From the NCBI RefSeq assembly GCF_963853765.1, contig NC_088855.1, positions 58,094,001 to 58,158,000 on the forward strand: 64,000 nt of DNA, given 5' to 3'. The stretch's first letter is position 1. Each line of letters opens with the position of its first letter. The notes below the pieces were generated by a model. It was not told where the DNA came from, made no database searches, and was given only the letters and a program-made list of their open reading frames with translations. The position numbers and the translations under genes are program-made. Origin of the DNA: Magallana gigas. Lineage: Eukaryota. Positions 37,503-39,936 of the stretch are shown one piece after another.

Positions 37503-39936
37503 TCATAATTTTGTTATTGTTACATTATATGGCAATAGTTTCTTTTTATCTGGGTTTTTTGTTGCCAGCACTATGATTTTTTTCCCCATATTTCGTAAGC
37601 GTTTTATGAAGCTGTACTGAATTCGACATGTGCAACGTTTGATATCCACTGCGATATATTCTTGAATTTTTAATCCATAAGCACTTCGTTGAGATCCCAT
37701 AATTAATGTTGCATTTCTGTTTATTTTTAACCACATCCCCAGCCATGATCTCCCATCTCCATATTTTGATCCTGTAATCCATAATATTTCTGTGCTGTTT
37801 TGCGCATCTAATTGTCTAACAGCTTCCTGTTGCCATTTCCTTAATGGTGCATCTTTGAATAACTTCTCTGCATATTCCTGAAACAGAAATACATGTAAGT
37901 TATTTACAATTTCAGATATTAGACCTCTAAAGGGGCATGGTCACGATTTTGGTTAAATTTTATTTTTCTGTTTTTATTAATATTTACAATGCCTTAGGAG
38001 TGCATTTCTGATGATCAAATGAAATTTGGGTGCCAGTCAATGAGTTTTAAGCAATATACAGGGCTCACAATTCTTTATCATGTCAACAAGGCTCGTGCCC
38101 TGTTTTTGTTTACATAGGTTCAATATACCAGGAAAAAATCTTTTTCAAGCTGATTTGTCTATATTCTTATCTATTTTAAGCATAAATAAACAGTTCCTAA
38201 TGATTAACACATTCATTTTAGGTCTAAATCTGGAATTTTCATTTCAACATTCAAAATGTAAACAAAAGCTTTGTTTACATAGCAAGGAATTGTAAGCTCT
38301 GTAACTTGCTTATAACTCAACAAATGACGTACACTCAAAGTTTGGTTGCTTATTATAAATGCCTTACTGAAGCATTGTAAACATTAAAATTGAAAAAAAA
38401 AATTGACCAAAATCGTGACCATGCCCCTTTTATGATGTTGTATTTTCAGTAAGTACTTGTGGTGCCAATTGACTTGTTGCTATAGATTAATTACTGAAGT
38501 ATTATAATACCGGTAATCTGACATCAGGAGTTTGAAGAGCTGAAAAATTAAAACTCTATTGATAAAAAATTATTTGGCTCCATTGTTGATACAACTTCAG
38601 ACTCCTGATGATTATATATACTACAATAAAAAAAATTAATACTCCCTAGTAGAATAAAAAAAAACAACATATATTTTAGCTTTATTAATGATTAAACTTC
38701 ATACTGATGGCCCTAGGATTAAAAAGCTGTGCATGTAGAAGACTAGAAGTTAGAACTTGAATACAGTTCATTAAAGGGGCATGGTCACGGTTAAATTGGT
38801 TGAAATATTTATTTTAATGTTTACAATGCTTCAGTAAGGCATTTTTAATAGGCAATTTACCAAAATTTGAGTGTCATTGTTGAGTTAAAAGCGAGTTACA
38901 GAGCTTACAACTCTTCCCTATGTAAACATTGTTTTTGTTTACATTTTGATTGTTGAAGAGAAATATAATTTAATTCCAGTTTTAGACCTAAAATGAATGT
39001 GGTAAACATTAGGAACTGTTTATTTTTGCTTAAAATGAATTTAAGCAGATAGACAAATCAGCTTGTAAAAGATTTTTTACTAATATATTGAACCTATGTA
39101 AACAAAACAAGGCACGAGCTTAATTGTTTACATGACGAAGAATTGTGAACCCTGTATCTTGCACGTAATTCATCGACTGGCACCCAAATTTTATTTGATC
39201 ATTAGAAATGCATTCCTAAGGCATTGTAAATATTAAAAACAGATTATATTTCATTCAAGAAGTAACTGTGTGGTCATGAATCAATTGCCCCAAAACTTCT
39301 AGAACTCTAAGTGCAAATTAAGTCTCTGAAAGAGACACAAATTGATGAGGAATCTTTACATGCATAATTGTTTACAGAACAGTTCAAAGTTGAAAACTAT
39401 TACTGCACTAAAGTGCGACGTTTACACAGTTACATGCTGAAAAAATAGACATTTAAGAAAAATGTATGACAAAATAGCTAAATCAAGCTATTATGAATAC
39501 AATGTAGCTTAATTTATAAAGCTATATATAGAGATTGTGCTGGACCTGTATAACACACATCAATATTATAATGGTGCACGTCTGAATGCAGAGCCTAGGT
39601 GGGTACGACCAGTATTTACTATACGTACTGTGTTACCAGCTCCAATATATATACTCTTTTAATAACATTCGATAAATCTTTTATTATACACCTGTCCAGA
39701 CATCTGGACAAACGTATCTGAAACTAACTCTGTACTTTTGAATAGTTATTATCATTATGTTCTATAATCACTAAATTACTATAAATCAAGATATATGTGA
39801 GCTCCCTTAAAAAATTTCACCGGATCAATATTAAACTTATCCGATAATTAACTGGTGGTATTTTACTAACCTGTCCTTCTCGCTCTTGCCTTTTTCGTTC
39901 TTCATATCTTCGATTCTTATAAAAATATTTCTCCAT
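37503..39936 (-). CDS. Two-exon ~146-aa protein resembling the SF3 helicase domain of CRESS-virus (nanovirus/alphasatellite-like) Rep
   Basis: Exon 39871-39936 (MEKYFYKNRRYEERKRQEREGQ, donor GTTAGT) joins in phase 0 to exon 37503-37877 (acceptor TTTCAG): EYAEKLFKDAPLRKWQQEAVRQLDAQNSTEILWITGSKYGDGRSWLGMWLKINRNATLIMGSQRSAYGLKIQEYIAVDIKRCTCRIQYSFIKRLRNMGKKIIVLATKNPDKKKLLPYNVTITKL*. AATAAA lies 21 nt past the stop (37477-37482). The start codon is uncertain. Confidence 0.65.
37931..38428. mobile_element. Kolobok-like non-autonomous element (intron of the Rep-like gene)
   Basis: TIR AGGGGCATGGTCACGATTTTGGT / ACCAAAATCGTGACCATGCCCCT. Flanks CTAA and TTTA (degenerate TTAA). Confidence 0.75.
38775..39243. 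mobile_element. Second copy of the same Kolobok-like element, inverted, one end missing
   Basis: TTAA-AGGGGCATGGTCACG at 38771. 39175-39243 is the reverse complement of ~37965-38037. Confidence 0.7.

Follow-up and report, generated by a model that had tools for sequence, protein, structure and literature searches.

A single-copy gene derived from a CRESS-DNA virus Rep helicase, possibly co-opted, in the genome of Magallana gigas

We analyzed a stretch of 64,000 nucleotides (nt) of the Magallana gigas genome (contig NC_088855.1 of assembly GCF_963853765.1, positions 58,094,001 to 58,158,000 of the forward strand), referred to here as the window; positions are counted from its first letter, and its sequence includes 269 N. 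Reading this sequence directly, we found a two-exon gene on the minus strand with a product of 146 amino acids (aa). Its second exon almost certainly derives from the superfamily 3 (SF3) helicase half of the replication-associated protein (Rep) of a circular Rep-encoding single-stranded (CRESS) DNA virus. The gene consists of the following parts.

39871-39936, minus strand: exon 1, with the ATG at 39936-39934 and 21 further codons, 22 codons in all
37878-39870, minus strand: intron of 1993 nt, GT..AG, phase 0; the junction is also implied by XP_011423805.1 and A0A8W8KIQ0
37503-37877, minus strand: exon 2, with 124 codons (37877-37506) and the stop at 37505-37503; SF3-derived and open in the window copy
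37477-37482, minus strand: AATAAA polyadenylation-type hexamer, 21 nt past the stop; a putative signal

An in-frame stop lies 6 codons upstream of the exon 1 ATG. The intron has the donor GTTAGT at 39870 and a pyrimidine-rich tract followed by a CAG acceptor that ends at 37878. The initial annotation of this stretch had described a 124-codon exon, a canonical intron of about 2 kb and an AATAAA just after the stop, all of which we recovered when re-reading the minus strand. Its splice model, which joins 39871 to 37877, likewise held: the joined exons match UniRef entry A0A8W8KIQ0 (A0A8W8KIQ0_MAGGI, Magallana gigas, 146 aa; report id P0092) at 100%, and they differ in 2 residues from XP_011423805.1 (LOC105325794, "uncharacterized protein", Crassostrea gigas; report id P0091). 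Thus, two annotation sources give a two-exon product of the same 146-aa length, and the reading of the fragment as a second exon is supported by annotation, not by reads. We consider it probable that the gene is transcribed and spliced as annotated. Exon 2 lies in a stop-free stretch of 145 codons (37506-37940) that ranks 11th by length in the window. As had been remarked earlier, the open reading frame (ORF) track missed the exon as a whole, because this track begins at the first ATG, GTG or TTG; there is no earlier such codon in the frame, and only the final 77 codons are given.

In several haplotypes (L001-L004 and L006-L015, compared with window positions 37878-37919), an ATG stands in frame 14 codons ahead of the acceptor; the window haplotype does not have it. 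If left unspliced, transcripts of those alleles could encode a product of 138 aa (P0001, P0094, P0095), and this possible product would hold the entire Rep-derived part.

The viral origin of exon 2 is carried by sequence comparison. A phmmer search of 1.84 billion representative proteins returned 88 distant matches (E values from 3e-10 to 9e-4), nearly all of them to proteins of 290-370 aa that aligned at about residues 160-260. All ten of the ten best matches have an N-terminal endonuclease domain, either Viral_Rep or Gemini_AL1. When the 88 matched proteins were in turn compared with the window by tblastn, exon 2 was found with E=8e-16. We also built a profile of 341 positions from 86 of the Reps and ran it on every stop-free stretch of the 64 kb. 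It matched only 37506-37940 on the minus strand (E=5e-29, profile positions 167-301 of 341), while all other stretches had E values above 9 and the exon 1 ORF one of 19. Where the matches of the profile search are named, the name is 'putative viral replication protein [Cressdnaviricota sp.]'. In the alignment, the likeness to Reps covers the whole helicase core and the helix preceding it, and the order of motifs quoted in the initial annotation is present in the window. The Rep-helicase derivation proposed there is therefore borne out by phmmer, tblastn and profile alike. This homology surfaced only through the library-wide phmmer search and the family profile; the oyster protein alone gave nothing significant against Pfam, PHROGs and the sequences of the PDB, with DUF5734 as the best match (E=0.04).

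Sequence comparison places unclassified Cressdnaviricota Reps from metagenomes (P0003, P0004, P0008) as the nearest relatives, and these have a circovirus-like endonuclease part. One of them, P0004, is encoded on a contig of 1867 nt together with a convergent ORF for a capsid-like protein of 230 aa. A Rep and a convergent ORF are the usual layout of small CRESS-DNA viruses. The Rep family profile matches the Rep of porcine circovirus 2 (7lar), the nearest solved relative of the family, with E=1e-29; this match rests on the endonuclease part of the relatives. The initial annotation had compared the protein with the Reps of nanoviruses and alphasatellites; the CRESS-DNA assignment stands, and the specific link to these two groups does not. 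A profile search directed at short relatives consisting of the helicase alone recovered full-length viral Reps only. Two further weak phmmer matches, P0016 (6519 aa, on an ENA contig of 2.1 Mb) and P0088 (1726 aa), consist of five short stretches each; P0088 appears repetitive and of low complexity, and both are probably not Rep relatives.

We obtained an AlphaFold2 model of the 146-aa product with a pLDDT of 93; it was made on an alignment of Reps and so leans towards the Rep fold. The model shows a P-loop alpha/beta fold of SF3 type. A Foldseek comparison with predicted viral structures (BFVD), which had been proposed as a check, gave Reps wherever the top 50 matches are named, with E values down to 5e-8 and TM-scores up to 0.86. 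Among solved structures, the papillomavirus E1 SF3 helicase and AAA+ ATPases matched best (E of about 1e-3). We infer that the product would retain the P-loop alpha/beta fold as well as the helices ahead of the helicase core. The presence of cellular AAA+ proteins among these fold matches, like the silence of the Pfam and PDB sequence searches, would also suit a cellular P-loop NTPase gene that merely resembles a Rep, or a transfer from host to virus. Such an origin is very improbable, because every significant sequence relative is a Rep with two domains, encoded on a contig of about 1-3 kb, no cellular family falls between these Reps and the oyster protein, and the searches of protein collections found no related conserved gene family in other animals. 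Instead, within the Reps the oyster protein appears as an outlier: truncated, without the signature and on a long branch.

The comparison with the 86 Reps also revealed what the oyster protein has lost. Among the alignment columns also present in the oyster protein, 17 reach a conservation of at least 90% across the Reps. The oyster protein keeps 9 of these and has lost 8; for the Reps, the median number kept is 17, and no Rep has fewer than 10. The lost columns include signature positions of Walker A, of motif C and of the arginine finger, and the B' signature is likewise not kept; the protein retains the acidic residue of Walker B together with many structural positions. A single in-frame deletion of 16 residues has taken out the conserved loop that lies between Walker B and motif C. 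The altered Walker A lysine, the altered motif C asparagine and the shortened segment ahead of motif C, all pointed out in the initial annotation, are thus confirmed by the alignment, as is its statement that catalytic residues were lost while the frame stayed open: the window copy of exon 2 has no stop and no frameshift. The protein thus appears to be without the residues that all 86 related Reps use for binding and hydrolyzing ATP and for sensing the neighboring subunit, and it is very probably ATPase-dead. From the established SF3 mechanism, a product that has lost these residues could not work as a helicase.

The loss extends to the remainder of the virus. No HUH endonuclease part was found in any of the six frames of the 64 kb with the Rep profile and the 88 Reps, which widens the earlier remark that no HUH motifs are visible upstream. 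No trace of a capsid gene was detected in the 64 kb either, and the 230-aa capsid-like ORF of the nearest relative remained unmatched in the window. Of a complete functional CRESS-DNA Rep, the locus therefore offers the SF3 homology and the same predicted fold, while the HUH domain and a small circular genome with a capsid gene are absent. In contrast to a viral rep, the oyster gene is chromosomal, bears an intron and has a host-like base composition.

We then asked how many copies of the element exist. More than 150 Logan short-read contigs from many sequencing runs carry exon 2. All 22 of the 22 genomic contigs that were aligned have one and the same unique 3' flank, and upstream they share the acceptor and the last 80 nt of the intron; tblastn and the Rep profile found one copy only in the 64 kb. 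The element is one fixed host locus and neither a transposon nor a contamination. As a virus-derived sequence at one fixed chromosomal site in many individuals, it is an endogenous viral element (EVE). The intron holds the following repeats.

about 37929-38430 and about 38772-39240, no strand assigned: inverted pair of repeats resembling miniature inverted-repeat transposable elements (MITE-like), about 0.5 kb each

According to a repeat search, the two arms are 86-96% complementary and form a near-palindrome of 1.3 kb, which makes up about 1.3 kb of the intron. Their terminal 17-mer is found 3 times in the window, compared to an expectation of 0.01, and every short-read contig breaks at the repeat boundary. 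As these repeats lie only 50 nt upstream of exon 2, the locus could be imagined as belonging to a mobile element present in many copies, whether as a transposon that encodes a Rep or as cargo of the repeats, a possibility that the initial annotation had named as a check on its own reading. We regard this as the least credible explanation of the locus. The single copy and the flanks shared by all contigs compared speak against it, the repeats stop short of the Rep homology, which is itself detectable from within three residues of the splice acceptor, and Helitron-type elements carry an SF1 helicase, not an SF3 one. A multicopy Rep fused to an SF1 helicase, as in Helitron-like elements, is thus not what is found here, since the locus is single and its relatives are of SF3 type.

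Exon 1 encodes a highly charged helix. We considered whether it could be the segment of a Rep that directly precedes the helicase, in which case the intron would have been inserted into a once-continuous frame. Adding exon 1 raised the Rep-profile score by 2.5 bits; since 200 shuffles of exon 1 did as well, this idea is unsupported, and the origin of the exon appears not demonstrably viral. Scans of the locus with Rfam and for tandem repeats gave nothing relevant. Upstream of the ATG lies the following region.

39937-40130, minus strand: 5' flank and putative promoter, with slightly higher G+C and CpGs present

A short G+C-rich block, GCGCGGGAAA, is preceded there by a CGCGCATGC-like palindrome (window 39990-39999, minus strand, and 40000-40030; 55-90 nt upstream of the ATG). 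The block is conserved between haplotypes, and block and palindrome presumably resemble E2F- and NRF1-type sites. Some contigs are only 78-84% identical to the window over exon 1. Their origin from other species was ruled out, as they are bisulfite-converted reads of the same haplotypes; three such converted Logan contigs (L029, L031, L032) cover window positions 39522-40597. In L029, all 67 of the 67 cytosines over 39659-40130 read as T, including those of 16 CpG, and the 5' end of the gene was therefore unmethylated in that sample. In oysters, the unmethylated state goes with low or inducible rather than housekeeping expression.

We also examined whether the coding frame is maintained. The mean identity to Reps is 0.296 for the oyster protein compared to 0.385 among the Reps, and the protein therefore sits on a long branch. 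In exon 2, 7.35% of point changes would make a stop, so that a frame free of constraint would have a probability of 0.065 of remaining open at 10% neutral divergence and of 0.004 at 20%, indels not counted. The G+C content at third codon positions is 0.28 in exon 2, which is host-like, and 0.43 in the nearest viral rep. Among the window copy and 17 contigs, 10 synonymous and 9 non-synonymous sites segregate, giving a ratio of non-synonymous to synonymous polymorphism (pN/pS) of 0.23 (P=0.002; P=0.02 with a neutral non-synonymous share of 0.72), although the contigs were found through called ORFs, a sample that favors intact and similar alleles and biases this ratio downwards. Compared with haplotype L030, exon 1 has 1 difference in 66 positions, a synonymous one, whereas the upstream region differs by 4.3% and the intron by 11.3% (Fisher P=0.04). 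Exon 1 with its ATG and the splice donor are thus conserved in haplotypes that differ by indels in the flanking sequence. The open frame on a long branch, the host-like composition and the small number of amino-acid-changing polymorphisms together suggest that the coding sequence is kept by at least weak selection.

The pN/pS bias weighs against a maintained gene, as do several observations that would fit a non-functional relic, that is, a decaying viral element whose frame is open by luck and whose two-exon gene is a product of annotation pipelines, with nothing made beyond noise transcripts. Intact exon 2 is present in about 155 contigs, beside which alleles that alter the ORF segregate: one frameshift variant (2 contigs) and two distinct deletion variants that change the product length (1 and 2 contigs). 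Polymorphism density is 5.6% in the coding part and 7.5% in the 3' flank, a difference that is not significant (P=0.17). No spliced contig was found among the Logan contigs covering the locus, all of which are unspliced genomic DNA, and an exact look-up of the products of XP_011423805.1 and A0A8W8KIQ0 recorded no identical called gene product. The protein collections searched yielded no relative of 40-90% identity and no orthologue beyond the 90% cluster. The oyster protein has lost half of the columns conserved in Reps, and the unmethylated 5' CpGs of L029 would also fit a relic. On the other hand, an unconstrained AT-rich frame of 124 codons should have gained stops, given the low probabilities above of its remaining open, the sole deletion relative to Reps is in frame, non-synonymous polymorphism is in deficit, exon 1 with its ATG and donor is conserved amid indels, and the same 146-aa product stands in two annotations, including a first exon of 22 codons located 2 kb away. 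Weighing these points, we hold a relic to be a real possibility but a somewhat doubtful one, and we put the chances that the gene is maintained by selection at about even. The same balance applies to the broader view of a maintained coding gene with some non-enzymatic function. Domestication, which the initial annotation had proposed, is accordingly sustained in part: the Rep origin, the open frame and the ascertainment-biased pN/pS agree with it, while the ORF-altering alleles and the wholly genomic contigs do not. We conclude that the locus is a genuine Rep-derived EVE which may have been co-opted.

The genes around the element are host genes, with the exons and domains listed below.

18958-21093, plus strand: Toll-like receptor type protein (LRR and TIR), a long open frame and host gene
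34338-34520, plus strand: PDCD5 exon (dsDNA_bind domain; Pfam PF01984, E=4e-6, above the curated cut-off)
42400-45300, plus strand: several short exons of a coiled-coil gene, divergent from the Rep-derived gene
46352-47575, minus strand: large exon of an SLC52-family riboflavin transporter (Pfam PF06237, E=3.5e-121)
49895-50488, plus strand: VWA domain protein, a long open frame and host gene
51689-52648, plus strand: protein kinase, a long open frame and host gene
59789-60967, plus strand: DNA photolyase, a long open frame and host gene

The Rep-derived gene is placed between PDCD5 and the coiled-coil gene. The PDCD5 exon lies 3 kb past its 3' end on the opposite strand, so that the two genes are arranged tail-to-tail, in agreement with the PDCD5-adjacent position noted earlier, and the riboflavin transporter exon is located 6.4 kb upstream. 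A G+C-richer block at 40400-41000 is a candidate promoter of the coiled-coil gene and could be shared. In addition, arrays of a 21-nt tandem repeat in both orientations occupy 41782-42264 between the Rep-derived and the coiled-coil genes.

The simplest history of the gene would begin with a 5'-truncated rep fragment that lay downstream of a host promoter region. The fragment would then have become spliced to a short upstream exon supplying the ATG and the charged helix. The resulting product would be a small, non-catalytic protein of P-loop fold, able to act by binding only. In Rep hexamers, the helices before the core and the helicase core itself make up the ring, as seen in SF3 and Rep structures such as 7lar. 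Since the retained part is this ring-forming part of Reps, the most specific hypothesis is a non-hydrolyzing subunit that interferes with Rep rings. Among conceivable actions, the most likely would be an association with Rep-type ring oligomers or their partners, as a non-catalytic subunit or a decoy against related viruses. An antiviral decoy role is conceivable, although we consider it unlikely. A little less likely still is that the helicase half of a Rep was domesticated by the oyster to serve as an ATPase-dead subunit, which would join or cap the Rep rings of related viruses and thereby block their replication, and the dominant-negative role already suggested in the initial annotation is put forward as a hypothesis only.

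CRESS-DNA-like endogenous elements, that is, Rep-derived sequences in host chromosomes, are widespread (Liu et al. 2011, PMC3198968; reviewed by Rosario et al. 2018, PMC6186406). Some of them are open and expressed, and co-option has been proposed (PMC3198968). Compared to these elements, the oyster copy is helicase-only, carries an acquired host 5' exon and intron, and is without the enzyme signature but still open, which is an uncommon set of features for a Rep-derived element. A similar outcome is known from avipoxviruses, whose captured Reps (apvRep) have inactivated catalytic motifs and simplified domains, show dN/dS values of 0.17-0.33 and are expressed (PMC10193959). One of them, apvRep-5, is a helicase-only captured Rep, and non-enzymatic or dominant-negative roles have been proposed for the captured avipoxvirus Reps (PMC10193959). 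The oyster gene shares with them the capture of a cressdnavirus rep by another genome, the simplified architecture and the inactivated catalytic motifs. It differs in that the recipient of the apvReps is a poxvirus and not an animal, and in that expression and conservation across species are established for the apvReps. U94 of human herpesvirus 6 (HHV-6) is another captured Rep, in this case of parvovirus type, in which both domains are present and Walker A and B are kept (PMC10193959). It resembles the oyster protein as a captured Rep with partly inactivated motifs, and it has co-opted, non-replicative roles. In contrast, U94 belongs to another Rep lineage and has both domains, while the oyster protein is without the full Walker A/B set. 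In our literature searches, we found no paper that names this locus, LOC105325794 or an oyster Rep-derived gene.

Rep-derived elements are common, yet evidence for their co-option in animals exists for very few, and captured, enzyme-dead Reps under selection have so far been documented mainly in other viruses (PMC10193959). The gene described here is a clean candidate, being single-copy, helicase-only, equipped with an acquired exon and intron, and already annotated twice as an "uncharacterized protein". Its co-option is therefore directly testable with existing oyster data from transcriptomes, proteomes, resequencing and comparative genomics. The analysis provides a functional name for LOC105325794 and adds further evidence that CRESS-DNA viruses once reached the oyster germ line. 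If the antiviral reading is true, the gene would be an EVE-derived immunity gene against single-stranded DNA viruses in a farmed mollusc, born by the capture of a host 5' exon and intron beside PDCD5.

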